Shown here piece after piece: positions 141 through 37,960 of a stretch of 64,000 bases of DNA. Each line of letters opens with the position of its first letter. The first letter of the stretch is position 1. The translations under genes and the position numbers were made by a program. Source of the stretch: Paramoeba atlantica (taxonomy: Eukaryota > Protista > Discosea); assembly GCA_977017575.1 (NCBI GenBank), contig CDRNVI010000156.1, positions 186,001 through 250,000 on the forward strand, written 5' to 3'. The notes under the pieces were generated by a model. It saw only the letters and a list, made by a program, of their open reading frames with translations, was not told where the DNA came from and did no database searches.

Positions 141-349
141 ATGAAAACAATAAATTATTTCAAATTCGAAAATAATGCATTTGGAGGTGGATTACATAAA
201 ATTGAGATATTTCAAATCCCTCAAAAGTTGAAGTTGTTTTTTTTTTGAAACTGACCATTTTTCTCACAAACACACAGTCTTGAGTCCATCTCGGACTGTG
301 TGTCCCAGACTGCCAATTCTATTTTTTCACATAATTTTCTTCTGGTGAT

Positions 350-1913
350 TTACATTTCTTCATAAGAAATATCAAGGTCTGAGTCGTCCAGAGAGATAGA
401 ACTACCACAATCCTCTGCCATTCGATCAAAAGCTGTGTCTCGATAATGTGTCAGAATCATCCTTGATCGAGATTTTTTGGGCAGTCTAAATTTGATTAAA
501 TATGAGGAAACTTGTTCGTTTTGATTCAAAAATCACAACAAACCTCCATTGAAAGAAAACCATGAGACCAATCGGTAACATTTCGCAGAAGGTATAAAAA
601 ATTACATAGTAATGCCACCTCACGTAATCAACAAAAGTCGAAGTCGCAGTCAACCCACTCTCGCCACGACCAAAGTCAATCTTCAAAAAAAAAAATAAGT
701 AAAAAATCTTCAAAGATATTATTTTTTGAAGTCACAAACTTGAATTAAGAGAAGGATCGCTCTTGCCAACATCATAAACGTTACAATTGTTGCCATCAAA
801 CTTAACTAATGAAAAATGGGTGAACAAAAATAATAATAAAATTCACAAACGAAAAATCAGACTTTCTTTGATTTTTCATGAAGAGGTTTGTCGAGAACTA
901 ACAGAATTGGACTTTGGGTATCTGCCGAAGGGATTGATCTTGTCATCTTGTGGAGAAAGAAACCAACCAAAAAAAATGCAATCCCCTCGAAGACCTGGAG
1001 AAAAGGGAAAATGAATTTTCCTTTAAATTGATTTTTGAAAAAAAAAAAAACCAACCATTATCAATCCTAAGATGAGGAAGAAAGAGGAGTGATATTGAGG
1101 GTACTGAAATCAAAAAATCATCAGACAAAAGAGAAGGGGATGTGAAGACAGAGAATGAATCTTACGCTTGAAGTTTGATAGATAAAGAAGGCGCATAAAA
1201 ACAAATTGAGGTTAATTAAGACTAATGACCCAATCTGCAAAAAGGTGAGAAAAAACGAGTCGACTCGAAAAAAAAATGATTACAAAGAGACAACAATCTT
1301 CAAGATAAAAAGTCACTTCAGAAGCAAATTTAGAATTATCATTTCCGGTCTTCATGTGACTAGAAGAAAAAGTGAGTTGGGAGGCCTCTGTTGAGAGGGG
1401 AGAAGAGAACAGAAAACAAAACTAGTAAAAGGAAGCCCAGAAAACAAGAATAATTCCATATACTTGTGCAAACAAAATTGAACAAGTTTGTGAGATTGCT
1501 TGATTTGCATATCGAACGACTGACAAGGTAATCAGGTGTCACAATTTGAACTGAAAAAAAAAAATTCAGAAATGAAGAGGAGAACCTCGAGTGACATTAT
1601 CTGTATCCCAAAAGACGATGTAGAGCGTGACTTGAAGTAAACGAAGAAGACAGATAATCAAGGCAAACTACCGAAAAAGTAAGTGAGCCTCTCACTTTAC
1701 TTTGACTCAAAAAAAAAGGAAGAAAATCCAACAAACCAGAAAAAAAGATCTTTGGTAAGTGTTCTTTTTTCTTCTTGTCATGGCTTCATAAAATTGATAA
1801 GAGCACACAATCGAAAGAAAAAAATACATAACATCGATATAAATGAAGGAGTATGTCCAAGCAGGACCCCAGTAACAACAAGAGGGATCCCCTTTTGACT
1901 CGGGGTCCGTCAT
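350..1913 (-). CDS. Multi-exon 7TM membrane protein, TOM1/THH1/GPR137-like (paralogue 1)
   Basis: N-term MTDPESKGDPSCCYWG; hydrophobic exons; late exon YYVIFYTFCEMLPIGLMVFFQWR; last exon RLPKKSR...YEEM* with stop at 350-352. Homologous to the two + strand copies. Confidence 0.6.
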
Positions 1914-2135
1914 TGTACTTTGCCTTCTTCTTTTTTGCCGAAAGCCTTCTTCTCACTTTGCCAAACCGCAGAAACAAAAAAACAAAAAAAAATTGTCGAT
2001 GACATCATCATTTTTGTTGAGGAGCACAATTTGATTTGAAAAACATGAATCGAAAACAATCAAGTTCGTCTCTGGCATGCCAGCTCAGCAAGTTTTTTTT
2101 TTCGTTTTTTGTGTTTTTGGTGATGCGCCAGAAAG

Positions 2136-3684
2136 ATGGTTGATTCGGTTGATTCAGTCGATTCTGGTTCTGATTCTGTTGATTCTGATTCAGTTGGTCA
2201 TGATTGGCCCAGCTGTTGTTACTGGCGTGGGATTTGGGAAGTCGTCTGTATTATCTTGCTTTTCACTTATTTATTCTTCTTTGTGTTTAATTTCTATTGT
2301 TTATGGAGGCTGGCGCAGCGAGCTGGGGAAGGACGATTTCGATGTAAAAAGTTTTTCCATCGAGTTTGAAGATTTTTTTTTGTTTTTATCTCTAACATTT
2401 AATGCTTGTTTTTTTTTCTTAAAATTTCTCCAAAATAGTCTTCGATCTCTCTGACCAGTGTCCGAATGCTTCAAATGATTTTTTTGATTCTTGGAGACTC
2501 AGTGTGGCCTCATCAAACATGTTTCAGAATTTCCTTCTTTTACCTTTCTCTTTTTTAAAATTAATTTCTCTTTTTCGAAAAGACTTGTATTACATTGCCC
2601 AATTAATCACCTACATGGGTGCAAATCTTTTTGTGCTGGTCTATGGTGCCATGGTGGCTTATTGGGCTACTTTTTATCTGTTTTGTTGCTCTCTTTTTGT
2701 GACTTCTATCTTGGAAAGAAACTAAAATTCTTGGAACAGCCAAACAAAATATGGAGATTATTTTTCAACAACAAAATATAATGAACGTCTTCAAATCGCC
2801 ATTCTTGGAACAGAGGTTCTTTTTTATTTTCTCTCCCTCCCTTTGATTGTGCTGTTCAAACTCTCAATAATTGTGTAGATATTCTTTTTGTCAATCATTC
2901 TCCTCGAATCTGCTCTTCTCTGTTATATGAAATTGGTTCAAAACAAAGCCCTTCTTGTGGTAATCCCTTTCCTCTTCTTCACTTCCATTATTTTGGTTGG
3001 TTCTTTTCTCTATGATTAATTGCTCCCTTCGTCTTCTTAATTTAAAATGACCTCTTTTTCTCAGCTCCTGGAAGGAATCGCATTTGCTGTTGTCGGAATT
3101 CTCCTTTATTTAACTCTCCAAGATCCGGGAAACCCGATCAACTTCAACCATGCTTTCAGCAACAAATCCTTTCAAGTTTCTCATTTTCTTTTTTTGCTTT
3201 TTGCTTTTTGCTTTTTTTTGAACTTGTTTTATTTTCTCAAATTTTTTTGCAAAAAAGATTGTCGTAATTGCACTTATCCTCTTTCTTGTGATGTTTCTTC
3301 GAGCTATTTTTCTGATTGGGGAGTCAATTGCAGCCATGAACTCAAATCTGGGAGAGATTTATTCAGAGAGGCCATATGATGTAAATGATTCAGATCATAT
3401 GTTTATGGGAGAGGACCTGACCTGGTGGTTTTACTTGTTGTACTATCTTCTGGGTGAATGCTTTCCTTTGGGTCTCATGACTTTTTTCCAATCAAGGTCT
3501 GTCGTCAGGGTGAGATTGATTTGACACAATCGTTTTGAGATCTCATATTTTTGCTCACAGGCTCCCGAAATCCAAGAAATCCACTTATGAGCTCGGAGGT
3601 CCTTTTCGATCAACTATCAATTTTGAAGAAGAAGAAACATTGCAACTTCGTCCAGCTCCAGAAAGTGAATCTGATTATGACTGA
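2136..3684 (+). CDS. 7TM membrane protein, TOM1/THH1/GPR137-like (paralogue 2)
   Basis: DWPSCCYW...CKKFFH, GANLFVLVYGAMVAYWATFY, WWFYLLYYLLGECFPLGLMTFFQSR; last exon RLPKSKK...SDYD*. Confidence 0.65.
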
Positions 3685-4022
3685 AACACAGAAAAGCATT
3701 GTTTGAGACAAAAAGATTGTCTCTTAAACTTCGTGTTTCTTTTTAATCTTTCCAATGGTCTTCAATATTTCTTCTCAAAAGTGCAGGTTGGTTGCGCCCT
3801 TTGGGAAATTGAAGACACCGCTCGCCGGGATAAGATTCAAAGAAATATCAAACGACACCAACATGAATGGTTTTTTTGAAAGGGCAATGACTTTTTTTAG
3901 CTTCCAAAAAAAGAATCAGAAAAATGAAAATAAAATCAAAAACACCCCCCTTTTCATTCCGCGTTTTGCGTTTTCGTTTTTGCTTTTCTTTTTGGTTCGC
4001 AAATGAGCCGTGAAGCTTGCTC

Positions 4023-5585
4023 ATGACTCTGGATTCTGATTCAAATGGCTGGCCTGATTGTTGTTATTGGAACAGATTCTGGGAAATCACTTGCTCAATC
4101 TTGTTGACAGTCTATCTTCTCTTTTTGGGATTTAATATGTATTGTTTGTGGCGGTTGAGAGGGACTGAAGGGAAGTTTCACTGTAAGAAGTTTTTTCATC
4201 AAGTTTGTTTTTTGTGTTTCACTTTGACCCAACTTTTGCTTTCTCAACTTTTCTGTTTGGCAGTCATCTGGTATATTGACAAGTGTTCGTGCCATTCAAC
4301 TTCTCTTTTTGATTTTGGGAAACGCTGTGTGGCCACACACACCCGGTTCTTTCTATTTGAAGAGAGAGATTTATCCTTCTCCTCACTTGTCTAACTTTCT
4401 TTTTTTTTTGTGAACAGGGGTGTATTACTTCTCTCAATTACTTACTTTTATCGGTGGAAATCTCTTTGCTTTAGTTTACAGTGCAGTGATCGCTTTTTGG
4501 GTGACATTTTATGTGTATCTTCTCCTCTCTTTCTTGCGTTTGAGAACGAAACAAATCTGAATTGATTTTTTTCAGGCAAACAAAATTTGGAGATTATTTT
4601 TCAACAACAAAGTACAACCATCGGCTTCAAACATACATTACTGCAACAGAGGTTCTTTGATCTTTATTTGTTTTGAAATGAATTTTTGAGGAATCTTATC
4701 GAAGACCACAACAGATTTTCTTTTTGGTGATTGTCATTTTAGAAAGTTTCTTCATGGTGTACACCAAAGCGATTGTCAAACATTCATTTATGTTTGTAGT
4801 GGTCACTTTCTTATTCTTCAATGCTCTCCTCTTGGTTTGTTTTATCCTAAAATCTAGCTGTTCTTGCTGCATTTTTACTCACCCATCCATTTTGATCATT
4901 TGAAGTTACTGGAAGGGATCGCTTTCTTTATTATTGGTTTTCTCCTCTATTATTCTCTAAGAGATCCCACCAATCCTCTGCATTTTCAAATGACACTTAG
5001 CAGCAGAGCCCTTCAAGTTCTCATCTCTTTTTTTTTTTGCTCACTGATCAAAAATCTCACTTTTCACACTCCCCCAAAAAGATTGTTGTTTTCGCTCTTT
5101 TCCTTTTTGTTGTGATGTTTACAAGAGCGATTCTCAATACCATTGAAGTCTTTAGTATCACCCAAGGATTTCAAGGAGGTTTTTATTATCCTTCAAAAAC
5201 CTCTTTCTAATTTTCAAAATCTGTTTTTACTCACCCAAAAACAATTAATTTTGTGCTAGATTTTCATCAACCATATGATAAAAGACCATCTTCTCCGGAA
5301 GACTCTGATCAGATGTTTATGGGAGAAGATTTTTCGTGGTGGTTTTACCTTCTTTATTATTTTTGGGGAGAATGTTTTCCATTGGGTCTGATGACCCTCT
5401 TTCAATCAAGGTTCGATCAATTTTTTTTCCCATCAGCTTCTGATGATTGATGATGGTTCTCCCAAACCAGACTCCCAAAATCCAAAAACTCGGTCATCCA
5501 TTGGAGTTCTCAAATTGAACCAACTGATGAAACAATCCAACTTCGCCCAACAGCAGACGGGAATGACTCTTATGACGAAGATTAA
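4023..5585 (+). CDS. 7TM membrane protein, TOM1/THH1/GPR137-like (paralogue 3)
   Basis: GWPDCCYW...CKKFFH, WWFYLLYYFWGECFPLGLMTLFQSR; last exon RLPKSKN...YDED*; similar exon layout to paralogue 2. Confidence 0.65.
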
Positions 5586-5713: not shown

Positions 5714-7908
5714 TCAGACTACTTGCCCAATTTCGTCTCCGTCAGGATCAAAAAGTCCTTTCAGTGTGGTCAGAGAGGAAAATGCAGAAGAAGGTCTTTT
5801 GGAGAAAGATGATGCAGTTTCTGGCTGGGATTGATGTTGCAAGAGAATTTGAACAGGAAATACAGATGAATATTCTCCACAATCAAAATTACATTCAAAT
5901 GAAAGAGAAAGATGCGAATGAGCTGACCAATCTGTTGCTGAAAAGTAAACGCGAATAAGAGCATTATCTGCATCAACTATTTGGGTTCGAGTTGATGGTG
6001 ATCCTTCTAAAGTTCCGTCATCTGATGATGCAGAACTTTTTATCGCCGAATTTCGTTGCAACTGATACTTGATCCAGGGTACTTTAAGAATCTGGAGAGA
6101 AATAAGAAGAAAGATTTTTAGTCAACTATTTTTTGAGAAAAAAATTAAGAAGAAAAAAGGGTGAAAAAAACCTGAGTTTTCACGAGGTCTGGAACTTGAA
6201 GATGTTGTTCAATTTGGAGGGATTTAAGAGAGACAGTGACTGATGCCTCTCTCAGATTTGTCACTCTCAATTGCAATTCCATTGCCTCATCTTGAAAAAC
6301 ATTTGAATAAAAATTGGAAAAAGATTGAAAAAGAAAGCAAACCCGTCCCAGCACTCGTTCTTTCCCATTTGGCAACAGAGAATACCGGAATAAAATAACA
6401 GGCCTTTCAACAAAAGAAATGAACAAAAAATAATGAAAACACTTTCTTCTTGAAAAATTTTGGCACTTACACAATGTTGCCTCTGAAATTCGAGGGAATT
6501 TAAAGTTGGTTTCACAATAACTTTGTCACATGTTCCACACCTTTTTGATCTTCTTGATCGCAGTGTCTGATAAAATGAACAAAAATGAGAAAAAAAAAAG
6601 GAAAAAAAGTCAAATTTCTCTCAAACAAAACCTTTCGGTGAAGTGGAATTTCGCTTAACTTCATAACCCCATTTTCAATGGCTATTTCTTCTCTACAAAG
6701 AGAAAGAATTTGTTGTCTATCATCGTGAACCCCAGGTGGAAGAGGATCCTCTAAAAAGAAATGAACTCAATTCTTTTCTGGGAAAAAAGACAACAAAAAA
6801 ATATTAAAAAAAAGGTTGATTCAAACCTTCAGAAGGGAAAGAGTTGATTCCCTCAAGATGCTTCCCTCTCGTCACAGATTTCGATTTGAAGAGACTCTCA
6901 TCTTGGAGTATTTTTTTCGAATTTTCGAGATGAGCAAGAGCTGGAGGTAATTCTTCTGGATCTAAAGATGTGTGTGGCCAAGAAAGTTCAATTTTTTTAA
7001 GAAATAAATAGAAATTCTTTGAAAAGTGAGAAGAACCTTCTTTTGCGATCAGGCGACTTGAAAAAGAAGATGACAAACTCGTTTGTAAAGTTGCCCCACT
7101 CCCAGAAGCAAGGGGATGAACAAATGATGGAACAAGAGGTTTAGAACTACTCTTTGAAGTACTAGAAAATGGAGGATCTAAGAGATCTGATTGTTCGTGC
7201 ATCTCTTCTATAATCCCAGAAATGACATTTTGTGCTTTATCCATTTCTTTCTCTCGAAGAACATTTCTCAAAGCAACATCCTCAGGACTCAATGCATATC
7301 CACAAGGTTCTTGCTTTGTTTCTTCTTCTTTTGGTTTTGTTGTTGTCTCTATTGAAAGAAGAGGCTGATCGTCTAAAAGAGAAACCCCCTCTTCAAGAGA
7401 ACTCTTTCCTTTCAGAAAAGGAGGAAGAGGGTCAACCATCACTTGAACATCTCTGAGAGCTGACAAAGAGTTCCATCGACAGAGAGGACATTTGAGATAG
7501 ACTCGGTCATCTCCAAGAGATTGAGAATAGGTCAGTTGGGATTGGCATCTGGGGCACTCAAAACATTTTGAACAACTTTTGTTTGTTTTGTTTGTTTTTA
7601 GAGGAGGAGGAGAGAAAGAAGAGAGAAAGCAAACCACAAACCGATTTTTTTGTTTCGTTGCTGTCGAACTTGTAATATTTTCAAGACAACCAGGACAAAA
7701 ATAAGAGTCAACTTCTTCTCGAATACAAAAGCTTTAAAAAAAAAAGCATCAACAAAGAAGAGAAAGAAAAGTTTGAGGGAGAAGAGAAAAGAAAAAACCG
7801 GCATTTCAGACTCGAACAAGAAACACAGAAATAAAGGTTCCATTGTGGTTGAAGATGCCCACACTCACACCCAACCAGAATCTCTGCTCTTCCCGTTCTC
7901 CTCCTCAT
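5714..7908 (-). CDS. DCTN4: Dynactin subunit 4 (p62)
   Basis: Spliced N-terminus LYFCVSCSSLKCRFCIREEVDSYFCPGCLENI...KNRCSKCFECPRC...YLKCPLCRW matches the p62 Cys-rich region; C-terminal beta-rich exons at 5714-6500. Confidence 0.85.
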
Positions 7909-7978
7909 CTTTCTTTTTTCACTCTCTCTTCCTCTCTTCAACCCCTCTCTCTCACAAAAGGAAACGAAAACCGCCAAA

Positions 7979-10163: not shown

Positions 10164-11276
10164 TTAATTTTCATTTTGAACAAAACACTTTCCCTCTTTT
10201 TCCTCCTCTTTTTCCTCCTCTTTTTCCTCCTCTTTTTCCTCTTTTTTTTTTTTTCCATTCTTCTTCTTCTTCCTCCTCCTTTTTTTTTTTGGTGGTTCAT
10301 TTGTTGTAGTTGTGGTTGGAGGTTTTGGGATGGTTCTTTCTTGGAAGAGCTCGCGTTCTAACTCAACTCGAGTAAAATAATGGAGGAGCAGAAAAGATCG
10401 GTGAATTAAAAAGATTCCAACCAAACGTTCACTCTTTGAATCGTTCCATACATCATAGGATCGAGTTCCATGCCATAGGACATCTGTATCCAAAAAGATT
10501 CCATCCCCAGGAAGCCACGGAACAGATTTGTCTGTATCTCCAATCTCCAAAGAACCCTCTCCGTACTTATCACTTTTAATTAAAAACAAGAAAGATATGT
10601 AATCATTCTCATCTTGATGGAGGATGGACGCCCCTTGAGGACACATAAAGAGGTGAAAAAGACCAAACTCTTGGGGATACGGTCGAATTTTCAAAACTTT
10701 CACAACGTCTGGCCGGTATCGAGTCAACTTGGCAGAAGCAGTCTCCCCAAGTTCTACTAGCAGTTCACGAAGTTCTGAGCTCATTCCATTCCTGCCTCCT
10801 TCACCAGCTTTAAAGACTTGATCAATTCCAGCACGATAGTGGGCTTGTTGGTTCCAAAGACCACACCGATAATAGGTTTTTTCTCTGTCTTCTGCCCTTC
10901 TGTCATTCGTCAGCTTTTCCCATCGTTTCTCTGCCATCAACACAGAGGCCAATCTTTCCATTTTTTCCTCTGTAAATATTCCCTTCAGTTTGTGGGCTCG
11001 GTAACAATACTTCCCCTGGGGAGTTTCCACTGGAAACTCCAAATAAGCGTTCGCATTCAAGACTGGATAGCATGACGTTGCTGGCACAGGGGGCACTCGG
11101 TGTCTCGTTCTTTTTGTCGGATTCTCGATACTAAAGGAGATCTTCCTCATTTTTTTTGAGTTTTTTCTCTTTCTCTTTTTTTTTTCGTTTGGAACAGAAA
11201 CTTTCTCCTCTTCTTCCTCTTTCCCTCCCCTCTCCCGAAAACTTTCCTTTCCCTCTTCTTTCGCTCCTTCCAACAT
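10164..11276 (-). CDS. TET/JBP-like 2OG-Fe(II) dioxygenase (cassette 1), intronless
   Basis: HQD (10611-10619)...GEGSLEI...PWLPGDGIFLDTDVLWHG (His ~10470)...ERLVGIFLIH matches the HxD...PGD..F...L.H...R...F.H pattern of fungal/algal TET/JBP proteins. Confidence 0.75.
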   Translation of the reverse strand: MLEGAKEEGKESFRERGGKEEEEEKVSVPNEKKKRKRKNSKKMRKISFSIENPTKRTRHRVPPVPATSCYPVLNANAYLEFPVETPQGKYCYRAHKLKGIFTEEKMERLASVLMAEKRWEKLTNDRRAEDREKTYYRCGLWNQQAHYRAGIDQVFKAGEGGRNGMSSELRELLVELGETASAKLTRYRPDVVKVLKIRPYPQEFGLFHLFMCPQGASILHQDENDYISFLFLIKSDKYGEGSLEIGDTDKSVPWLPGDGIFLDTDVLWHGTRSYDVWNDSKSERLVGIFLIHRSFLLLHYFTRVELERELFQERTIPKPPTTTTTNEPPKKKRRRKKKKNGKKKKEEKEEEKEEEKEEEKEGKCFVQNEN

Positions 11277-11465
11277 TTTTCTTTTCTTTTTCTTTTTTCT
11301 CCTTCTTTCTCTCAAAGGCGACCTGCAACTGCAAATATCAAGCCCAAGAAAATGAATTTGAAAAAAGAAAAGAAAAAGAAAAGGTGGCAGAAACAAAAAG
11401 AAAAGAAGAAAGAAAAAAAAAAGTTGCAAAAAAAAAAACTTTCTTTTTTGTGACTCAAAAATTAG

Positions 11466-12147
11466 CCAAATCAGGTTGTTTCCCTATCGCATGAGGAAAA
11501 AAAAATGCCAAATCAAGTTATTTCCCTATCGCATGAAAAAAAAAAAAGGAAGTTTCTTTTTTGACTTTGAAAGCTCCACAAAAGATCAAAGAAAGTTTTC
11601 AAGTTTTGGGCATTCATGTTGCTTCCAAACCTATCACAAAATGAAACAAATTCACTGTTGTTGAAAGATTGAAATTGAGAGACTTTCTTTTTTACCCAAC
11701 CAAATCAGGTTATTTCCCTATCGCATGAAAAAAAAAAAGGAAATGTCCTTTTTTGACTTTGAAAGCTCCACAAAAGATCAAAGAAAGTTTTCAAGTTTTG
11801 GGCATTCATGTTGCTTCCAAACCTATTACAAAATGAAACAAATTCGCTGTTGTTGAAAGATGGAAATTGAGAGACTTTCTTTTTTACCCAACAAAAACCC
11901 ACCAAATCAGGTTATTTCCCTATCGCATGAAAAAAAAAAAAGGAAGTTTCTTTTTTGACTTTGAAAGCTCCACAAAAGATCAAAGAAAGTTTTCAAGTTT
12001 TGGGCATTCATGTTGCTTCCAAACCTATTACAAAATGAAACAAATTCGCTGTTGTTGAAAGATTGAAATTGAGAGACTTTCTTTTTCACCCAACAAAAAC
12101 CCACCAAATCAGGTTATTTCCCTATCGCATGAAAAAAAAAAGGAAAT
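11466..12147. repeat. Tandem array of ~200-bp units (3 full + 2 partial)
   Basis: Units start with CCAAATCA(G/A)GTT(A/G)TTTCCCTATCGCATGA at 11466, 11508, 11700, 11902 and 12104; the full units are near-identical. Confidence 0.95.
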
Positions 12148-12205
12148 TTTTGTTCTCTTTTGCACTAAAAACTTTTTATTGCTTCAGAAAAAGTTTGACT
12201 CAAAC

Positions 12206-15200
12206 TTATTTAAGAATGAAAGTCACAGTTCCCCCTTTTTTTTTGATTCCCCCACTGGTAAAGGTCACTTCTGTTGTATCCTCACTCCTCGATTCCATTT
12301 CTTGATCGTCGTCTGGAGTGTTATCATTCGAACTTTTTGGCTTTCTTCTGCTTGAAAAACCTCAAAAAAAAAAGGTTTTGAAAAAAAAAAAAGTGAGAAA
12401 AAAATTAACTCATTTTTTGCTTTCTTCAAATTTGCTTGCAAGTTTCTTATTTTCTGACTTTGTTTGTCCGAAAAATTCTTCCTGTTTTCATGCATGAATT
12501 AAAAATAAAAAATGTTCAAAAAAAACAAATAAAACCAGTCCTCAGTTTGATCACCTTCCTTCTCCACCCTTTCTTGGAGTTTGTCTATTCGTTTCAGAAG
12601 AACCTCATTAATCTTTTTCTCCTCCTTTTTCTCCTCCTTTTTCTCCTCCTTTTTCTCTTCCTTCTTCACCCTTTTCACCCTTTTCACGCGACATTCTGTT
12701 GGCTGTTTTCTTTTCCGCTGGAGAGACTTAACAAGCTCGAAATAACGGTCATGATAAAGAGGAGAAAAGGATATCCGATTCCCGATCTCAGATAACTGAA
12801 ACACCAAAAAGTTTGCCTCGCACCCTGAAAAGAAAGAAAATAAATAATTAAAATCAAAAATTTTATCAACATTAAAAAGATGTTACGTTTGGATGTGAGT
12901 TTTTTTTGCACATAAATCCGCACATGAAGATCTGCAGATGAAATGATACCAGCACAAAAAAAGATATCTGGTTTCTCAGTTTTTTGACAGGTTTTTTTTT
13001 TAAATTCACAACCAGATGCTATTAAAACCTATTGGGATTTTATGGTAGTTTAATTTTAATTCAGGTGCCAAAAAAAAAAAGAAAACCTGCTGAGAAGAAT
13101 TTTCAACAAGAATATGGGATGGTTTGTGCTCAGCATTTCCATAACCATGGGCTTCAAGGTTAGCCTCTTCATCAAGATGGAAAAAGAGAGAATACAATCT
13201 TCCATGGTAAGTCTGTTTCAATTTTAACTGGTTTGTTTCATAATACAATGTCATTTGTTCCAATGTTTCATAATCTTGATCTTCCACCAACCTTCTTTTC
13301 TTTCTTTCATTTTCTTCCTTCAGTTCTCTCTGCCTCAATTTTCTTTTTTTTCTTTTCTCTTTTTCTTCTTTTTCTTCTTTTTTCCCCTTTTTTTCTTTTT
13401 CTTCCTCTTTTTCTTCTTTTTCTTCTTTTTCTTTGTTTTCTGGTTCTTTTTCTTTTTCTTCTTTTTCTTTTTCTTCCTCTTTTTCTTCCTCTTTTTCTTC
13501 TTTCCTCCCCTCTTTTTCTTTTTCCTCTTTTTCTTCTTCTTTTTTCTCTTTTTCTCTTGCCTCATTTTCTTTCTCCTCTTTTTTTTCTTCTTCTTTTTCT
13601 TCTTTTTCTTCGTTTTCTGGTTCTTTTTCTTTTTCTTCTTTTTCTTTTTCTTCCTCTTTTTCTTCTTTCCCCCCCTCTTTTTCTTTTTCCTCTTTTTCTT
13701 CTTCTTTTTTCTCTTTTTCTCTTGCCTCATTTTCTTTCTCCTCTTTTTTTCTTTCTTCTTGCTCTTCTCCTTCTCTTTGTCCTTTCTCCCCCCCTTTTTC
13801 TTCCTCTTTTTCTTCTTTTTCTTCGTTTTCTGGTTTTTTTTCTTTTTCTTGCTCTTTTTCTTGCTCTTTTTCTTCTTTCCCCCCCTCTTTTTCTTTTTCT
13901 TTTTCCTCTTTTTCTTCTTCTCTTTCTCCTTCTTCCCCCCCCCATTTTTCTTCCTTTTCCTCTTTTCCTTCTTTTCCTTCCTCTTCTTCCTCTTCTTTTT
14001 TCCCTTCTTCTCTTTCTTCTTCTTCTTCTTCTTCTTCTTGCTCTTTTTTTTCCTTTCTCTCTTCTTCCTTTTCCTCTTTTCCTTCTTTTCCTTTCTCTTC
14101 ATTCTTCTCTTTTTTTCCTTCTCTTTCTTCCTCAGATGACAATACAACACTTGGAGAAAAAGATTTATCAGAGCCTGATTGAAAAAAGTTTAAAAAGGTG
14201 TTTCCTTGCTGAAAAAAAAAACAAAACCTTGTTGTTGCTTGCTTCTTTCTTCAGAAAGGATGCGCCATATTTCTTGACGCCCAGAGGCCACATCTCTAAG
14301 CAGAAGAAAAAACTGAAAAGACAGAAAATTTAAAATCACCACAAAAAAAAGGAAAATGAAACTGTTTAGTGAATAAAATGTTTGAATCCTGTTCTTCAAC
14401 AAAAAACTTCTTTTTACAAAAACTTTCTGCTGATTTGAGCATGTAAATCCCACAATCAAACAAATTTGGCTGTTTTTTCTTTTAGAAAAAATCCATCCAC
14501 CCTCTCAAAAACACTTCTTTACCTGCTGTGGGGTATCCTTCTCTAAAACAGAACATATGATTGGCCCTTTTCGTTTTTCCTCTTGATAAGAGGCAAGATA
14601 ATCCAAAAACTTAATCCATTCCACAAGATTTGTTACCCAAGATGAATTGGACGACAGCATCATCCCAGCAATAGAATCATAGACCTGGATTGAAAAAGTC
14701 CTGCTTGGTGGTTTTGGAACCTCCACAATCACCAAGGCCCAGTGCTGCTTAAAATGAAGTGGAACAATTATGTAATTGGATTCCAAAGCTGCTTTGGCAA
14801 AACTTTTTCCAATTTTAGCTGTCTTGGGATCGAATTTGTGGGGGTTTGTGTGGGTTTTTAAGAAAAAAAAGGAAGGAGGAGTTTCAATTGAACTTTCACG
14901 GCTCCATTTTGGAATCTAATGGTCTTTCATTTAAGAAAAAATCCTTCATTCAACAAGATTCAAATGAAAAGAATAGACCAGAATATACTTCAAGTAGTCG
15001 AGCATGTAATTAATCATTGATCCGAATAAAGGAGCTTCAGGAAGCAAGCATTTGATATCAGAGACACTGAGATCAGTTGATTTCTCTGCAAGTGGTCGAA
15101 GAAAAACTGCAAGATCTAAAACAAAAAACAAAATAAAAAAATCATCTTTTACAAAAGAACAAAAATAATAACCATTGTTGGATTGGCAGATAGCGCGTAT

Positions 15201-15499
15201 TTGTGTTGAATATGCTGTATCTTCCTTCAAGAGAAAGTTAGTCCAAGACAAACAAAAAAAACAGAGTTTAACTTACATTTGGGGGTTGTAATTTTTCCTG
15301 AGGAGAATCGGGTGATGGTGGAGAGTCATCACTGCTCCTCCATGGGGGCACTATTTTGATAATTTCCAATTCACCCTCACCCTCTTCTGAACTGGAAAAA
15401 AAATTGAGAAAAAGGTAAAAATCAAACAAAAAAAGAAGATTGGAAGAACCTAATTTCTGAGTCAAACTCAGAGGTACTCTCTTCCATCTCGAGATCCAT
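12206..15499 (-). CDS. Ulp1/SENP-type (C48) cysteine peptidase with long Glu/Lys-rich tract, multi-exon
   Basis: YIIVPLHFKQHWALVIV (His), QVYDSI (Asp), spliced PQQ|PNLFDCGIYML (Gln/Cys); then E/K low-complexity region 13340-14130 and a C-terminal region ending TFILK*. Start MDLEMEE at 15499. Confidence 0.75.
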
Positions 15500-15658
15500 G
15501 AGAAAAAGGAAAAAAGAAAGGCAAAAGATAATACAAAAATAAAACCAAAAGGTGAACAAAAAAAAAATGACCCGCCCCTGCGATGCGGTTATATCCAATC
15601 GGATTCTTATAATAAATCTTATAGGATTTATTTAAGATTTTTCTTGCTAAAAATCTTC

Positions 15659-16349
15659 TTTGGTTCGGAAAAAAAAAGACTTTCTCTTTCTTTCTTCTTC
15701 TTTGCTTCTGGAAAATTGATAAAAGGGGGGAAGAGGGTCCCAAACAACCTCCATCAAAGAGATGGAACATGAGAAGATAATTGTAAGAGGGGGAGGAAAG
15801 TCATTATCAGCCAAATATACGGAACCACACCTGAAAACAGTTGATGGTATTTATATCAAAGAAGATTCTCTTCAGGAGAACAGACATTGGTTTTCTCGTA
15901 TTCACCCTGATGGGGAAAGATGGGAAGGCCGAATCTTCTTTGAAAGTGGTTCTTTTCTTTTATGATTTCATTTTCTCTCTCGTGATTCTTGTTGGATTGA
16001 TCGGAATCATAGGAGGTTGGAAGATCAATTTCTATAATCAATTTGATGGCTGGACTTTCAGCCAAAAAGAAGATCATCCACAAAATAAATACCCTCCTCT
16101 TGGCAAATGGGAACAATCTCGCTCAGCGGGAGGTGATCACCCAGCGAAGATTGATTACTCTGATATCTATCTTGACACAGAGGTTTGCATTTTGGTTTGT
16201 TTGCTTTGAGAGTGGTGTTTTTGGTTGTTTTGATGACTTCATTTGCAGGATTGTTTCGTGAAACCGGCGAAAAGAGAGAAATGAGGAAAAAGAATAAAGA
16301 AAGTAAAATTTTGATTCTGTGTGGATTGAATCTATTTGTCATCATCAAC
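15659..16349 (+). repeat. Direct duplication, right copy (~690 bp)
   Basis: Aligns with 7979-8670. Confidence 0.95.
15762..16284 (+). CDS. Small hypothetical protein, 3 exons, copy B
   Basis: Same exon structure and frame as 8086-8605. Confidence 0.7.
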
Positions 16350-30953: not shown

Positions 30954-33218
30954 TTACTCTTTTGCTGGTTCAAGAGGTTTTCTTGCCAATGTGAAATACA
31001 TGGGGGTGAAAGTCTGGGAGTGAATAGAAAATTGGTCAGCGAAACACCCAAAAAATAAAAATAACAATTACAATATAAAAGAAAAAAAAAAGAAAAATAA
31101 CATCAGTCTTTCCACCCGCAACAAGACCGTCAGCAGCTTGATTGAGAACAGCACTCACGGTATTAGTTCCTGAAATCTCGTTTTTAATATCGATTTTTCG
31201 AGAAAATAAAGAGGAAATTAAAGAAAAGGACACAGACCTTGAGGAGCAAGACCGAGTAATTCAAGGGTCCCAACAAATGTCTGAAGAAAGTTAAATGAGC
31301 GAACAAGAGGAGAGCGAGTGTCAAAAAAAAAAAAAAAAACCTTCAAAAACACTCGACCAACAGGTGTATGCTGGAAGTTATGACTCAATTCGTACTTAGG
31401 GGTCAAAGGATCATACCACGTAACATGGCAATCATTCTCTTTGTGAACCTAGAATCGAAAATAAATACTTTTCCAAGTGTTGAAAAAGATAAAAAGAAAA
31501 TCAAAAAAAGCAAACCAAATCTTCCGATTCCAAAACTTCCCATCCAGCCTCCTTAAGTGCCTCCACAATTTCATGAGTTGAAGCAATATCTGGAAGTCCA
31601 TCTCCAATCTCGATCATCCACTTCAATTTATTATGTTCTTCATTGTTTGGATCGTATTTGTCTGTCATGCACCACTTCATTGGGAAAAAATTGTCGGGGT
31701 CAGTCGAATTTTGTGAAGGGAGAAGGAAAAATAAAGAAAAGAAAATAACCTCGTAGCTTCCAAAGTAACCTCCTGGCTTTGTTACTCGAAGGAGTTCCTT
31801 AAAACATGCAACCTGTAAAATTAAGAATAACGTGAGAAAAGAAAACACTTTTTTTAGCTACCAAATATCCTCCTCTACCCCAATACAAACCTTATCAGGA
31901 GCATGAGCAGTGGCTTCAATTTCATAAACACCATCAAAGTAGTTATCTGAGAATTCACAAAATTGAGAACAGAATGAAAATGAGAGGGAAAAAGAAACGA
32001 AGATGAAGCGAGAGAGAAGAGTTTTTCAAAAGAAAAAGACAAAACCTTCATAAGGAATTTGCATGAAATTTCCTTTCACGAATTCAACTCGACCAACCAA
32101 ATCTTCACGGGCAGTATGTAATTTTGCTCGCATAATCTAAAAAAGAAACCATCAATCATCTTTTTAAGGAGTTTTACTAACGTTTTTATTTTTTGGAGGA
32201 CCCAATTCCCTGACGAAGAGAGTCAAAAAATATAATAATATAAAAAACCTGATAAGCATTATTGTTCAATCCAGTCACATGAGCTTCGGAAAATCGAGCA
32301 ATCTCTCTTGCAGGTCCACCAACACCACATCCCACATCGAGAATCTTTTGTCCTTTTTCTGTTTTGAAGAAAAATCTATTTGAGTTTTTTGGTTGAAATA
32401 TTAAAAATGAGAGGAAATTGGACCCATTTTCATCTTCATTGCGAGGTAGTGTTCGTGGCGGGCAATACTCTCATGGAATCCCTTGAAGGAAAAAAAAGTT
32501 CAAATAAAAAAAAATTGAAAACCACACCACAATCCCTCTCTCTGAGAGTGTGGTCTGAAAATATTGCTCAAAAAAAATGAAAACCTCAAATTTGTGACGT
32601 GGAGCAAAGTGAAACGAAGTTCCCCAGCCATACTCGTAAAAGTCTGTCACAAGATCGTAATAAAAATTGGCGAGATCTTGGTGTTCTTGCTGAAAGGAGA
32701 GAAAGGGAATTTTGAGAGAGAGGAATGAAAAAATGTTTGGAAGAATTTTCTCATCTCTTTCGAAAAAGAAATCTAAAAAAGAGAAAATTGAAAGAAAAAG
32801 AAAGAAAGGAAGAAAAGACCTTCCTCATGTCCAACTTCTCGTCCCCAGAATGCATCCTAGAAAAGGGGCGGGTGAAAAAAGGGAAAAGAGAATGAAAAAA
32901 AAAACAAGAATTCAAACTCAATGTATTCATGAACAACTTTTTCAACATAAGCAGGATCAACTCCAGCAACAATTACAACCTAAAAAACAATCATTTGAAT
33001 CCAACTTCAAAATTGAAGGTGCAAAAAAATGATGATTGGAAAAAGCAAAAAACCTCATTGTTGATATGTTTGGTCACGAAATAACCGATCACAAGAGCGA
33101 TCACAAGAACTAAACAACACTAAAAACCCAAAATTCAATCAAAATCACCTCTAAAAATAAAAAGGAAAGTTGACTCCAATAAAGAGAGAAAAGAAAAAAC
33201 CTTGTTGGCCGAGGGCAT
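30954..33218 (-). CDS. SMT1: Sterol 24-C-methyltransferase (SMT1/ERG6 family); start approximate
   Basis: [91 protein letters not shown]. Confidence 0.92.
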
Positions 33219-33281
33219 GACGAACCGAACCGACAAACACACAAGAAAAACGCGCAAAAAAAAGAAAAAGAAAAGAAAAAA

Positions 33282-33319
33282 CGTTGTGTAAAATCGAGGC
33301 CAACAGGGCGCCACAGTAA
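33282..33319 (+). repeat. Left terminal inverted repeat
   Basis: CGTTGTGTAAAATCGAGGCCAACAGGGCGCCACAGTAA; first 15 nt identical to the reverse complement of 37781-37795, next 23 nt 14/23 identical. Confidence 0.85.
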
Positions 33320-33568
33320 AATCTCGCAGATTCTCTGAAGCTCAAAAATCTCAGAAAATTCTTTTATTTTTTTTTGTTAGTGTTTTCCTCTTGTCTCTTG
33401 TTGTTTGTCTCTTTTTTGATCTTCATCTCGCCAAGACTTTTTGACTTTTCTGAGTGAAAAAAAATCATCTCACAGAATTGTTGCTCTTGTATGTTGGGAC
33501 AATTTTATCTGTTTATTTTTTTCTCACAGTACAAACTGTTTTTTTTGTGGAAGGTTTGTTAACCTCAA

Positions 33569-36027
33569 ATGGTATCACCATCAAAGAACGTAAGATTAAA
33601 GCGAGAAAGACTGGAAAAAGCGCGAGCAAAGAGATGGCTGAAACCAGCAACAATACCAAAGAAAAAGGAAAAAGAACAGAGATCTTCTATTCCAGTGAGA
33701 CAAGAGGGTCTTCCGAGTAATTATCAGGATTTTGACGAACGGAATAGAAGATATCAGCTTCAAAGAAAAGCTCGAAAGAAACAAGAACCAGTTCGAAAAC
33801 CAAACGTTGGGCCTCCTCGAAAGACCTGGAAGGTTTTAAGTAAGTCCAGAAAGCAGGCTCTCATTCGTGAAATGCGGAGGGGATATGAGGGGAATATCAA
33901 ACTCTTGTCGAAAGAATTTGTGAGTGAGGTGGCAAGAATTCCAGTTCAAAGATTGAGATTTCAGTACCAGATGGTCTTGGAATCAGGAGAAATTCTGGGA
34001 GGAGAATTTGAGATGACGAAAGAAAAAAAAGATTATGTGTTTGAGAAAATTCGAAAAAAGAAAAGAGAAATAGAAGAAACTGAAGAAGAAGAAAGAGTAA
34101 AAGAACAGAAAAAAGAGAAAAGGAGACAAAAAGGTTTTCAAGTTTTGGCAGAGGTGGCGAAAAGTTCAGTAAGCAAACGAGTCCTTCAAGATATTTTATG
34201 GGCCAGTGATGGAGACCTGAAGAATTGTTTCCTCCAACAGTTGCAAAAAGAAATCGATGAGGAGATGCAAGAAAAGCTTCCAAGCCACTCTTTTGAGAAA
34301 GGAGTTGATGGTCAATGGGTTGATCCAAAACAATTAGTTGATCTGATTTTTCCCTCAATGGTTGGAAAAGTTCACTGTCCTTCCTGGATGGTGGTGGTGT
34401 TGTCGGGTGATGGGCGAAAGAGTGGGAAGAACCATGGTGTCATTTTAACTCTCAAGATTTGTGTTGGAAATGCGAGGGGGAATTATGTTTCTTCTGTTTA
34501 CCCCATTGCAATTTCCAGAGGTACTGAAAAGTATCAAAATTTAAAAATGATGTTTCAATCTCTCCGAGAACCTTTGCAGGTCTTTTTCTTTTTCTTTTTT
34601 TTTCTTTTCTTTTTCTTTTCTTTTTCATTTTTTTTCTTTTTCTTTTCTTTTAAAAATGGTGTTTCAATCTCTCCAAGAACCTTTGCAGGTTTTCTTTTTT
34701 TTTTCTTTTTTTTTTTCTTTTAAAAATGATGTTTCAATCTCTCCGGGAACCTTTACAGGTTTTTTCTTTTTCCTTTTCTTTTTTTTCGAAAATAATTCTT
34801 TTTAAAAAAATACAGTGTTGTTGTGTTGGTTGGGTTAATTTATGGAACATTTATTCACAGACTTTGAAAAAAACAGAATTTTCTCTTGGTCGCAAAAAGG
34901 TAGTGCCTCGATTTTTGTTTTGTTCGGATGGAAAATTTCTGAACTGTGTGTTGGGAATGACTGGAGCTACTGGGACTTTCTCTTGTCCTTTTTGTTTCGT
35001 TCCAAACACCATGTGGGTGGATGTTTATGCCAAGAGACTTTCTGCCGATGATCATCTGAGAAAATCTCTCCTCACCCTTTCTCGTTGTACCCCTAATTGC
35101 CCACAACACCCGAGCAAATGCAGAGGTTATACTCACGGTTGTGAAAGAGACAACTTATTGATGGGGTTGGTTGAGTTGGAGGATATATTTTTAGATGAAT
35201 TACACTTATTTTTGCGTTTGTGGGACTTAATTCTCAATATTTTATTGGGTTATGTGGAACCTCTCAATCGAGAAGATGCTTTGGAAAGAGTGGCAAAGAA
35301 ATGTGGGGTTTGTTTCCATATGCTTGATGGACTCGATGATAAGGGGTATCAACTGTGGACTCCTTTAACTGGTGACCGAAGTAAAAAATTGTTGGATTCC
35401 TTAGTGGAGCACAAAGATTGGATGAAGGAGATTTTTTTGGTGGGAGACGAAGCGAAGCATTTACCTTGTCGGAATCGAAGAGCGAAAGAGGAGACGCACG
35501 AGGCGATGTTTGAGGGAATCTATTCTCTTTTTCAGCGACTGAAAAAGATTATTGATTATGTTCGAGATGATCGCAAGACTCTAAAAACCATCGAAGAGTT
35601 CGAAAAAGAAACAGAGATGTTTATCCAAGAGTTGTATGAGGGTTGGGGGAATGCAATTAAGAAGGGGTGGTATCTTCATATGTTGAGAAGCCATCTTCCT
35701 GCACAAATGAAGCGATTAGGAGGAAGCATTTATATGTGTAGTTGCAGTGAACAAGAGCGACTGAATGGGAAGCATACGAAACTTCTCTTGAATTGCATCC
35801 AGAAACATAATTCCTCGGACCAGTTGATGCAAAAACAAGCAAGCGAAATTTATTTCCAGTTACACCCCGACAAACAGAAGAAGCGAAATACTCACCAGAT
35901 TTCGAAGAAAAAAAACCCTTCACCGAGAAAGGGACAGATTTTTGCGACCGAAACGATGGATCAACGGAACAAACAGAACAAAGCCCAAAAAGAAAGAGCC
36001 ACAAGAAAAACAGCCAAGTTATTTTGA
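33569..36027 (+). CDS. Transib/RAG1-like DDE transposase, 2 exons (33569-34579, 34861-36027; ~725 aa)
   Basis: SGDGR (D1), CSDGKFL (D2), SCPFC, DELHLFLR, LTGDRSKKL, WYLHMLRSH (Zn His pair) and SCSEQERLN (E) follow the order of RAG1 D600/D708/C727-C730/H937-H942/E962. The intron joins EPLQ|TLKK in frame. Confidence 0.85.
34541..34760 (+). repeat. Triplicated ~40-bp exon end plus splice donor inside the transposase intron
   Basis: TTAAAAATG(A/G)TGTTTCAATCTCTCC..GAACCTTT(G/A)CAGGT at 34541, 34650 and 34720, separated by T-rich tracts. Confidence 0.9.
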
Positions 36028-36297
36028 TAACTGGTTTTGATTCGATTTTTTCTTCTTCTCCATTCTTCTTTTTCTTTTTTAAATAAAATTGAATCCTTTC
36101 TTTAAAAATAATTTGTTTTTGAAGACAGTCAGAGGTCTGGGAAAAACAGCGCATGAGCTGATTCAAACTTTGAGGGTTTCCTGCAAAATTCCTTTAATTT
36201 TTCCTTTATTGAGTATTTTTGGGTTGATTTTTTTACCTAAACATAGATAAAGTTGGATTCCAAAATTTTGTTTTTTGTTTTTTTTTTGTTTGTTCTC

Positions 36298-37077
36298 ATG
36301 TTTGTTCAATTCACAACCAAACCTCTTTCCTACAATCAACTGTATTATCGAAAAAATAAGCAGAAATTGAAAGAGAGAAAGAATCAAAAGAAAATCGCCC
36401 TTTCTTTGCATGCAAGTCGGCCTCTCGTTTCAGTTCGAAAATTAGTCCTCAACCAAAAATTCGACGAGCTGGAAAAATTGTTGGAAGCTGTTCCTCTGAA
36501 GACGTGTTATCGCAAGTTCATCAAAATGGAATGGAGTTTTCACATTGGGTATACTTCCTTTACTTTTGGAGCAAAATCTTTCACAACCCCTCACCCCATT
36601 CAAACTCCTCCCTACCAAAGTTTGGGGATTTGTACCACCCCCCCCCTCGAAAAACCATCCACTCCTCCATACCAAAAAATTTTATTCTCAAAAGGGACAG
36701 AAATAATGAAGTTGGTGGACCCAGAGTTTGTTTCCAAACAATATGTTGTGCATTTCTCGAAAATGTCTTCTTCTTCTCACGAAGTCCCTCTTCACGTCGA
36801 TGACCACGACATTGCTCCACAGTACATTGTTTATCTTGGAAATTGGACTGGAGCTGAATTACGAGCCTATCAGACCACCAAAGTCGAAAGAACTTCCACA
36901 TATCATTCACTTTCTTCGCCACGTCAATTTCTTTATCTCGACGGACGTTTGGCTCATGAGCTGGTCAAATATAATTTCCAAGGAGTTCGGTATGTAATGA
37001 TTGTTTATCAACTTTGGAGGGAAGATAAACTTACTCCAGATCCTTATTTATTCCCTCCTCAATTGATCGAAATTTAA
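36298..37077 (+). CDS. TET/JBP-like 2OG-Fe(II) dioxygenase (transposon cargo), intronless; ORF open from 36253
   Basis: LHVD (36793-36801)DHDIAPQYIVYLGNWTGAEL...LDGRLAH (36955)...FQGVRY (Arg 36988)VMIVY, i.e. the HxD...H...RYxxxxY double-stranded beta-helix signature. Confidence 0.7.
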   Translation: MFVQFTTKPLSYNQLYYRKNKQKLKERKNQKKIALSLHASRPLVSVRKLVLNQKFDELEKLLEAVPLKTCYRKFIKMEWSFHIGYTSFTFGAKSFTTPHPIQTPPYQSLGICTTPPLEKPSTPPYQKILFSKGTEIMKLVDPEFVSKQYVVHFSKMSSSSHEVPLHVDDHDIAPQYIVYLGNWTGAELRAYQTTKVERTSTYHSLSSPRQFLYLDGRLAHELVKYNFQGVRYVMIVYQLWREDKLTPDPYLFPPQLIEI

Positions 37078-37111
37078 CAAAAAAAAGATAAAAAAGAAGA
37101 TGTATTTTTTT

Positions 37112-37681
37112 TCATTGTAATTTTGTTCCCCAGACACCTTTCGTGAAAAGAAGTTGATATTCAGCTTTTAAAATATACCTGTCCACGAACTTGACAGAAG
37201 AAGAAATGACATCAACACCAAAACTATCGGAAGTTTCGTATTCATAGAGTCGTTCTGCATGTAACGAAATTTTTAATTTCTGTTCTTTTCCCTTTTCTGT
37301 GTTTTGGTCCAATAAAAGAATGCAGATTTGTTTTCCAATTCTCCGACTGCAATCATCTTTTGAGAGAATGTGAGAGCACTCATCGTAATTTGAGTACACC
37401 ACAGCCCATAAAAGGACTTTTTTTTTGAGGGCCCTGATCGTTGCAGGATCAGCAGAAACAAACGGAGAAGCTGGAAGATTTTGTTTCAAAGCAGCAGACC
37501 ACTCTACAACTTTATCCCAACCAAGAATATCCATCTCGAATGACGAACATTTCGCTTGTCTGACTGTTGGGACCATTGTTGCTTTTAATTTTGCGATCAG
37601 TAATTGATGATCTTGTGAGTTTCGAAAGGTTTCCGAACGGTTTCTTTTCTTCTCCCCATTTCCTTTTTCTTCGTCTGCCAT
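37112..37681 (-). CDS. Orphan intronless ORF (~189 aa) inside the transposon
   Basis: Uninterrupted ORF MADEEKGNG...WGTKLQ* with balanced composition, converging on the TET-like gene; no family recognised. Confidence 0.6.
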   Translation of the reverse strand: MADEEKGNGEKKRNRSETFRNSQDHQLLIAKLKATMVPTVRQAKCSSFEMDILGWDKVVEWSAALKQNLPASPFVSADPATIRALKKKVLLWAVVYSNYDECSHILSKDDCSRRIGKQICILLLDQNTEKGKEQKLKISLHAERLYEYETSDSFGVDVISSSVKFVDRYILKAEYQLLFTKGVWGTKLQ

Positions 37682-37757
37682 CAACAATTTGTTTCAAAAC
37701 AACAAGAAAGTTCTTTATTTAGAAATATTCAGTCTCAAACCAAAATTTTCCATAAAC

Positions 37758-37795
37758 TTATTATGGCGGTCTTGTTTCCCCGATTTTACACAACG
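37758..37795 (-). repeat. Right terminal inverted repeat
   Basis: Plus strand TTATTATGGCGGTCTTGTTTCCCCGATTTTACACAACG; its reverse complement matches the left TIR. Confidence 0.85.
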
Positions 37796-37960
37796 AGGAA
37801 CGAGCGGCGTGATGATCGGATGTTGTAAAATCAGAAAAACTTGTAAGACTCTTTTCAGATTTTACGTTTTAAGATGTTTATCAGAATCGTTTCCTCTCTT
37901 TATTTATCCAAATATGGATAATAATTGTTCCCCCTTGTTTTTTTGTTCGTTTTTTTGTTG

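Follow-up and report, generated by a model that had tools for sequence, protein, structure and literature searches.

Does the DNA between positions 33282 and 37795 of a 64,000-nt stretch of the Paramoeba atlantica genome represent a transposon that carries its own base-oxidizing enzyme? The stretch (assembly GCA_977017575.1, contig CDRNVI010000156.1, positions 186,001 to 250,000 of the forward strand; hereafter, the window) is nuclear DNA of an AT-rich eukaryote with short introns. We somewhat favor reading the element as an autonomous-looking RAG1-related transposon that carries a base-oxidizing, anti-silencing dioxygenase. In this model, a RAG1-related DDE (Asp, Asp, Glu) transposase would cut at 38-nt terminal inverted repeats (TIRs), excise the unit and re-insert it. 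Two passenger genes lie between the TIRs, one for an Fe(II)/2-oxoglutarate (2OG) dioxygenase and the other a transcribed orphan open reading frame (ORF), ORF3. The dioxygenase would oxidize a modified DNA base, most likely 5-methylcytosine (5mC) in the manner of TET/JBP enzymes, on the element or on nearby DNA. Such 5mC oxidation would erase or blunt silencing of the element by host CpG methylation, as has been proposed for TET-carrying transposons of fungi.

We hold with high confidence that 33282-37795 is an intact-looking, 4,514-bp, TIR-bounded, multicopy and autonomous-looking cut-and-paste DNA transposon. The TIRs, at 33282..33319 on the plus strand and 37758..37795 on the minus strand, form an imperfect 38-nt pair with 76% complementarity, which is perfect over the outermost 15 nt. 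The left TIR starts with these 15 nt, CGTTGTGTAAAATCG, and not with CAC, and the right TIR ends in CGATTTTACACAACG. In the whole window CGTTGTGTAAAATCG occurs at only two sites, both of them element tips, where 0.14 sites would be expected at ≤2 mismatches. Both TIRs end at genuine repeat boundaries, since related copies and assembly breakpoints stop there. Specifically, another contig, L001 (ENA assembly ERZ24900291), harbors a partial copy that is 99.2% identical and matches window positions 36353-37803; it retains the dioxygenase gene, ORF3 and the right TIR at another locus, and its similarity to the element breaks off right after the terminal CACGACG. In the public sequencing run X2, a contig containing 36650-37796 runs on (from 37796/37797) into a third, different right flank. 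Moreover, flank contigs stop after exactly 30 nt of element sequence (33282-33311), which is what k=31 unitigs should do at the edge of a repeat. Numerous contig pieces in the sequencing runs are 90-99% identical to the element, and the family therefore comprises several diverged copies. The imperfect 38-bp TIRs and the cut-and-paste character claimed in a preliminary description of this DNA were thus borne out.

The possibility that L001 represents the same locus as the window copy was rejected, as the right flanks differ. Likewise, the read-contig joints 33382>36370 and 34130>36370 were not accepted as deletion derivatives, their anchors being only 21 nt long and polypurine. When metagenome contigs were searched for the right terminus, five chance matches but no further copies came up; the contigs concerned are GC-rich (57-66% GC) and do not resemble the element. 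The L001 copy is 5′-truncated, being cut at window position ∼36353, within the N terminus of the dioxygenase. The adjoining ORFs (L001 1-3830) resemble, by eye, retroelement reverse transcriptase/RNase H, and a retroelement insertion or truncation may have occurred there. About 1 kb from the truncated copy, at 6148-7914 on the minus strand of L001, lies a 588-aa ORF whose alignment to the profile of the RAG1-like transposases is weak (hhalign probability 56%, E 1e-4); it lacks the CxxC and Hx4H residues and may be a degenerate or domesticated relative.

The transposase gene is predicted to consist of two exons on the plus strand. Exon 1 (33569..34579; 337 codons) matches the family profile with an E value of 1.3e-28, aligns to full-length homologs, and encodes a basic, low-complexity N-terminal part followed by the first catalytic Asp in a VLSGDG motif. 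A predicted 281-nt GT..AG intron (34580..34860) separates it from exon 2 (34861..36027, stop codon included), which encodes the second Asp (CSDGKF), CPFC, DELH, Hx4H (HMLRSH) and the catalytic Glu (CSEQERLNG) and aligns in register to the RAG1 regions around D708/C727/C730 and H937/H942/E962. Splicing at 34579/34861 is in frame and would give a protein of 725 aa that aligns without gaps to full-length homologs of 646-685 aa. Use of an alternative in-frame acceptor at 34816 would instead give 740 aa, with 15 added residues that are found in no homolog. We infer this splicing pattern from the GT..AG ends, the reading frame and the homolog alignment. As stated in the preliminary description, the ∼725-aa spliced product keeps all of the motif residues in the full DDE and zinc-binding order and contains zero stop codons. 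The intron is swollen by a tandem triplication (34540-34791), which, like ORF3, was absent from that description. The ∼70-nt repeated unit comprises the last 36 nt of exon 1, the splice donor and a pyrimidine tract, and the triplication gives three equivalent GT donors within the intron. The N terminus of the transposase contains neither a Chapa nor a RING zinc finger, with only two Cys residues preceding the catalytic core.

A HMMER search across the sequence library with the second half of the transposase as the query returned 116 relatives, most of them metagenomic. One cluster of these consists of distant relatives from the sea anemone Nematostella vectensis, in which they form a multicopy gene family. 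In an alignment of 24 sequences, SGDG, D-K-F, CxxC, DELH, Hx4H and a Glu ∼21 residues further on are invariant or nearly so. Single-sequence searches of the PDB gave no match, and single-sequence Pfam and NCBIfam scans of the four element ORFs gave nothing meaningful. The profile of the 24-sequence alignment, when compared with all PDB sequences, gave significant matches to RAG1-type proteins only, namely zebrafish RAG1 (E 4.4e-9), mouse RAG1 (E 9e-7) and the amphioxus RAG1-like protein RAG1L (ProtoRAG; E 9.5e-7). In these alignments the second Asp and the CxxC fall on RAG1 YDEK...C..C and the Hx4H...E falls on RAG1 H..H...E, in register, with an equal His-to-Glu spacing of about 20 residues. 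Consistent with this, the only transposase family in Pfam that was matched by any member was RAG1 (PF12940), by 3 of the 24 sequences with a best E of 8e-6. By these profile comparisons the remote kinship of the predicted transposase with RAG1 is real.

Is the element then a canonical Transib, the direct kind of transposon from which RAG1 arose, as the preliminary description had proposed? The significant relationship to RAG1 and RAG1L, with the three Asp and Glu catalytic residues and the CxxC and Hx4H zinc residues aligned in order, and the weak matches of three homologs to Pfam RAG1 fit such a view, and this part of the earlier claim stands. However, the D, D, CxxC, H, Hx4H and E motifs are shared throughout the CACTA-Mirage-Chapaev-Transib (CMCT) clade (PMC12730594), and this set is therefore not specific to Transib. 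Typical Transib elements have 5-bp target site duplications (TSDs) and 7-bp termini resembling recombination signal sequences (RSSs) (Kapitonov and Koonin, PMC4411706). By contrast, the tips of the element read CGTTGTG / CACAACG rather than CAC..., no RSS-like heptamer (CACAGTG-like) or nonamer is present at the tip, and CACAGTA is found only 28 nt inside the left TIR. The 5-nt flanks of the single full copy, AAAAA on the left and AGGAA on the right, agree at three of five positions and are not duplicated. In addition, the Pfam RAG1 matches that were inspected individually, as single sequences, fell below the gathering score, and no Helicoverpa Transib chain was among the PDB matches of the profile at E≤10, although the presence of these entries in the PDB copy searched was not checked. 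The distant relatives include the multicopy Nematostella proteins, and Chapaev elements have been described from Nematostella (PMC4411706). Also unlike Transib, RAG1 and ProtoRAG, the element has extra passenger genes and no RAG2-like partner. A strict Transib is accordingly a very unlikely identity for the element, whose transposase we file in the CMCT clade at large. On the sequence evidence, the predicted transposase is a RAG1-related DDE enzyme of the CMCT clade (Transib sensu lato) and not a canonical Transib.

Directly downstream lies the intronless dioxygenase gene, on the plus strand. The ORF spans 36253-37077 (274 aa); translation likely starts at the ATG at 36298, giving a 259-aa protein (36298..37077), a start that is favored because MFVQFTTKPLSYNQLYYRKNK aligns with the N termini of the homologs. 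The protein belongs to an orphan family with 11 members in 5.8 billion clusters, none of which contains a Pfam domain. Iterated searching of a word index with the dioxygenase-domain alignment yielded just 10 family members, again with no Pfam domain and with no bridge to annotated TET/JBP proteins, and a PHROGs scan of the family gave no match. H181-x-D183 (HVD in the element), H235 and R246 (numbering of the 274-aa ORF), corresponding to the HxD motif, the second His and the 2OG-binding Arg, are intact and are invariant or nearly so across the 11 members. Two AF2 models (pLDDT 78), the second of the domain alone, show a double-stranded beta-helix, with the fold ranking unchanged between them. 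VIA Z scores to many 2OG oxygenases are about 10-11, and Foldseek E values are about 2e-5. Thus the HxD...H...R dioxygenase noted in the preliminary description was corroborated by the ORF, the conserved residues and the modeled fold, and, judged by these residues and the model, it is a bona fide Fe(II)/2OG enzyme with an intact active site.

The second passenger gene, ORF3 (37112..37681, minus strand), encodes a 189-aa orphan protein, lies inside the TIRs and is arranged tail to tail with the dioxygenase gene. No homologs of ORF3 were found, and its language-model neighbors were of low confidence only. Contigs of one sequencing run, X5, cover it at 37144-37433 and 37405-37673 with zero mismatches. 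X5 is an RNA run, since its contigs skip the 61-, 74- and 81-nt GT..AG introns of a host gene. ORF3 is the only part of the element that is covered by RNA-derived contigs.

Homologs of the dioxygenase also occur in transposons with unrelated transposases. Four JGI contigs from separate metagenome samples (L007-L010) encode a homolog that is 47% identical and is flanked by a PIF/Harbinger transposase (DDE_Tnp_4, E 1.8e-16) on one side and, on the other, by a SAP/SWIM protein encoded on the minus strand. In L007, a 43-nt inverted repeat (217-259 / 3760-3802) surrounds all three genes. The segment 217-3802 of L007 forms a complete, 3.6-kb Harbinger-type element with TTA/TAA at its tips. In contig L004 the homolog follows an unclassified 972-aa protein and is itself followed by a small, Cys-rich minus-strand ORF, and a 22-nt inverted repeat (158-179 / 5037-5058) bounds the three genes. 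In contig L002 the homolog precedes an unclassified 880-aa protein, and a small, Cys-rich minus-strand ORF comes after the homolog. The 972-aa protein of the L004 unit (158-5058) and the 880-aa protein of L002 (3569-6211) are homologous, with 40% identity and the motifs DARH, SFDDCSDN and CESFHS. Neither has a Pfam or PDB match, and they may represent an undescribed transposase type. Finally, contig L006, from the same ENA assembly as L001, contains a paralog at 6019-6717 that is 51% identical and in which HVN replaces HxD; a piggyBac DDE fragment (E 4.6e-11) lies 1.5 kb away. With Asn in place of the metal-binding Asp, this paralog is likely inactive.

Thus, the dioxygenase gene lies inside the TIRs of the element and its homologs lie within TIR pairs in L007 and L004. 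The layout that recurs is a transposase (+), a dioxygenase (+) and a small ORF (−), and the transposases and the small ORFs are mutually unrelated. TET/JBP genes behave likewise in transposons of fungi (PMC12730594). The genomic context supports a role for the dioxygenase as transposon cargo. To our knowledge, no other dioxygenase recurs as cargo across transposons in this way. The nearest transposase relative with any flanking sequence (contig L005; 72% identical) has ∼300 bp downstream that contain neither the dioxygenase gene nor ORF3; a different minus-strand ORF is found there, and it matches neither of the two. It is thus only in this family that transposase and dioxygenase are shown to be linked, and the sequences do not show the pairing to be old.

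The copies of the element show a pattern of CpG decay. Comparison of the window copy with its siblings in the sequencing runs gave 34 well-supported variant positions; with the window copy as the reference, 26 of these are C>T or G>A. Of these 26 transitions, 16 are at CpG, compared to 13.6% of the element's C+G being in CpG (binomial p 1.9e-8). Between L001 and the window copy, CpG is involved in four of seven substitutions. The CpG observed/expected ratio is 0.73 for the element copy and 0.62 for the whole window. Such an excess of CpG transitions is the footprint expected if transposon copies were subject to CpG methylation and deamination, and, as indirect evidence, it supplies a rationale for a passenger that would oxidize 5mC. 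Separately, the CpG observed/expected ratio reaches its minimum for the window, 0.37, at 12001-16000, where purines and pyrimidines are distributed with extreme asymmetry between the strands; both strands carry long, low-complexity ORFs rich in Glu/Lys at 13006-14333.

What, then, does the dioxygenase act on? We consider it probable that it oxidizes bases in nucleic acids and, within that, give about an even chance to its being TET/JBP proper. When the family profile was compared with the whole PDB at E≤10, the only solved protein detected was NgTET1, the Tet-like dioxygenase of Naegleria (PDB 4LT5/5CG8), with HxDxxDIxP...G, the second His and the Arg in register. The longest structural alignments, of 176-184 residues, were also with NgTET1 (176-179 residues; Z 10.2-10.3) and CcTet (Z 9.2). 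Several points nevertheless weigh against a TET/JBP identity and, in the next paragraph, against the favored reading more generally. The NgTET1 E values of 0.055-0.098 are above conventional significance, even the 0.055 match being weak, the sequence identity is 14-15%, and the conserved N-terminal motifs WSFHLGYT and PHPIQ of the dioxygenase have no recognized counterpart in NgTET1. Among 9-11 family members there was no match to Pfam Tet_JBP (PF12851) or to any other 2OG family. Foldseek placed ALKBH2, Escherichia coli AlkB and ALKBH6 first for both models (E about 2e-5, TM 0.46-0.52), with TET absent from the top 50, and clusters of the ALKBH2 family and of 2OG-FeII_Oxy_2 were among those listed by an ESM Atlas shape search. 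These matches would suit an AlkB-type demethylase that removes alkyl or methyl groups (1-methyladenine, 3-methylcytosine, N6-methyladenine) from DNA or RNA, so that the element's nucleic acids would be protected or re-marked by a route other than 5mC oxidation. The dioxygenase stretch HTDDRDIAP resembles the ALKBH2 motif HRDDERELAP as well, which is a lead only. Yet no Pfam 2OG-FeII_Oxy_2 match was obtained, the family profile that finds NgTET1 picks up no AlkB sequence among PDB entries at a cutoff as lax as E 10, family members carry R-[FY]-[TS]-M-I-V-Y rather than the AlkB motif RxNxTxR, and AlkB genes, unlike TET/JBP genes, are not known as transposon cargo; we therefore regard an AlkB-type enzyme as unlikely. 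By VIA the highest Z scores belong to prolyl hydroxylase domain (PHD)-type prolyl hydroxylases and PiuC (11.2-10.8; root mean square deviation 2.9-3.7 Å), ahead of AlkB (10.3) and NgTET1 (10.2-10.3), and the language-model neighbors are viral hypothetical proteins, then a prolyl 4-hydroxylase (P4H)-like cluster with PF13640 (score 0.91, 181 shared features), and then a Tet_JBP cluster (0.88). A protein hydroxylase of PHD/P4H type or a small-molecule oxidase that has no action on nucleic acids, and is carried for another benefit or for none, would account for these rankings. However, Z differences of <1 amount to a tie, there is no sequence match to any P4H or PHD, and it would be hard to explain why a protein hydroxylase should have been captured repeatedly, and in one layout, by three or more unrelated kinds of transposon, a pattern that fits TET/JBP behavior, while the CpG-decay footprint supplies a rationale at the level of DNA. 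A protein or small-molecule oxidase thus also has a low probability in our view. Fold scores touch on the grouping with prolyl hydroxylases or small-molecule oxidases that the preliminary description had named as the finding that would count against it, without placing the family there. For comparison, the fungal "PE-type" TET/JBP proteins were accepted on HHpred E values of 1.4-19 together with structural similarity (Kojima 2025, PMC12730594), and the present evidence is of the same order, not better. TET/JBP membership of the dioxygenase is unproven, and the earlier label of a TET/JBP-like enzyme was not established, given the lack of a Tet_JBP match, the NgTET1 E value and fold scores that tie with or favor PHD and AlkB.

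It is also conceivable, although we doubt it, that the element is a dead relic in which no transposase is made, owing to the swollen intron and a lack of transcription, the dioxygenase is a silent passenger, and nothing works now. The triplicated donor region could impair splicing, and in the single RNA run X5 no contigs fall on the transposase or the dioxygenase; contigs drop rare transcripts, and the missing coverage is therefore not proof of silence. The L001 copy, truncated at its 5′ end beside retroelement sequence, and the HVN paralog of L006 also fit this view. On the other hand, both long ORFs of the window copy are intact with every conserved residue kept, its CpG observed/expected ratio exceeds the window mean, and copies with 99% identity indicate recent movement. 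Further points that weigh against the favored reading concern the enzyme, the insertion and the host. Two positions past the 2OG-binding Arg, the family carries Thr/Ser, but the window copy and L001 both have Val. Only the palindromic CG found at each tip could be a duplication, and it is indistinguishable from the TIR itself; were this outer CG/CG a 2-bp TSD, the termini would be TTGTG...CACAA. No empty site was seen among the sequences examined, so that the search for further copies and empty sites that had been suggested yielded the former (L001, the X2 flank and the 90-99% variants) and not the latter. Lastly, DNA methylation in the host is inferred from mutation patterns alone.

An autonomous RAG1-related transposon with a base-oxidizing dioxygenase would not be without precedent. 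In fungi, TET/JBP genes are found in a variety of transposons, CMCT lineages among them (PMC12730594), and such genes were described in 2025 in transposons with RAG1-similar transposases (ESTA, from rust fungi) and in EnSpm and Plavaka elements (Kojima 2025, PMC12730594). The suggestion in the preliminary description that the pairing of such a transposase with a dioxygenase had not been described is thus superseded by ESTA (PMC12730594). Similar to ESTA, the element is of the TIR cut-and-paste type, its transposase is detectably similar to RAG1 only, with D, D, C(2)C, H, H(3-4)H and E motifs, its dioxygenase gene is beside the transposase gene, and the TSD is possibly 2 bp; this likeness is drawn from the published description of ESTA. 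Unlike in ESTA, the possible TSD is CG rather than TA, the element has CGTTGTG (or TTGTG) at its termini, the host is a nonfungal protist, and the dioxygenase is from a different, orphan family that is not recognizable as Tet_JBP. KDZ and other TET/JBP-carrying transposons have been described from basidiomycetes (Iyer et al. 2014, as cited in PMC12730594). As in those elements, a transposon would here spread a dioxygenase of putative base-oxidizing activity together with an extra small protein, and related dioxygenase genes have been captured by unrelated transposon superfamilies. The element differs from them in that its transposase is not KDZ, its dioxygenase has no Pfam Tet_JBP match, and its host belongs to another eukaryotic supergroup.

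What is new here is the nonfungal protist host, an unplaced lineage of RAG1-related transposases, and an orphan dioxygenase family that is common to unrelated transposons. Our literature searches turned up no such elements reported from Amoebozoa or Paramoeba. To date, transposons carrying demethylating dioxygenases are on record from fungi, in which escape from methylation silencing is their supposed benefit; if the same is true in a distant protist, this would suggest that dioxygenase capture is a general, convergent counter-defense of DNA transposons. Only tentatively do we go further and propose that these genes found a family of base oxidases, neither TET/JBP nor AlkB sensu stricto, that is dedicated transposon cargo in marine protists. 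The family would have been passed among at least three to four transposase superfamilies (RAG1-like CMCT, Harbinger, the unclassified 900-aa type and perhaps piggyBac) and would act against silencing by host CpG methylation, parallel to and independent of fungi. The element also extends the host range and diversity of RAG1/Transib-related (CMCT) transposases. With its compact size of 259 aa, the apparently self-sufficient dioxygenase is a candidate for biochemistry, and the CpG-transition footprint makes the idea of a methylation arms race directly testable in P. atlantica.

Elsewhere in the window, at 10164-11429 on the minus strand, a 421-aa ORF resembles a second HxD...H...R dioxygenase; it had no Pfam match, no PDB match and no hhalign similarity to the dioxygenase family of the element. 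The rest of the window contains ordinary eukaryotic genes, including those for a cyclic-nucleotide phosphodiesterase, SDE2, WD40 and kelch proteins. Next to the element, a host gene at 32820-33249 (minus strand) is spliced and strongly expressed, with an RNA contig depth of 205. The 5′ end of its transcript is about 30 bp from the left TIR, which puts the transposon in or at the promoter of this gene.

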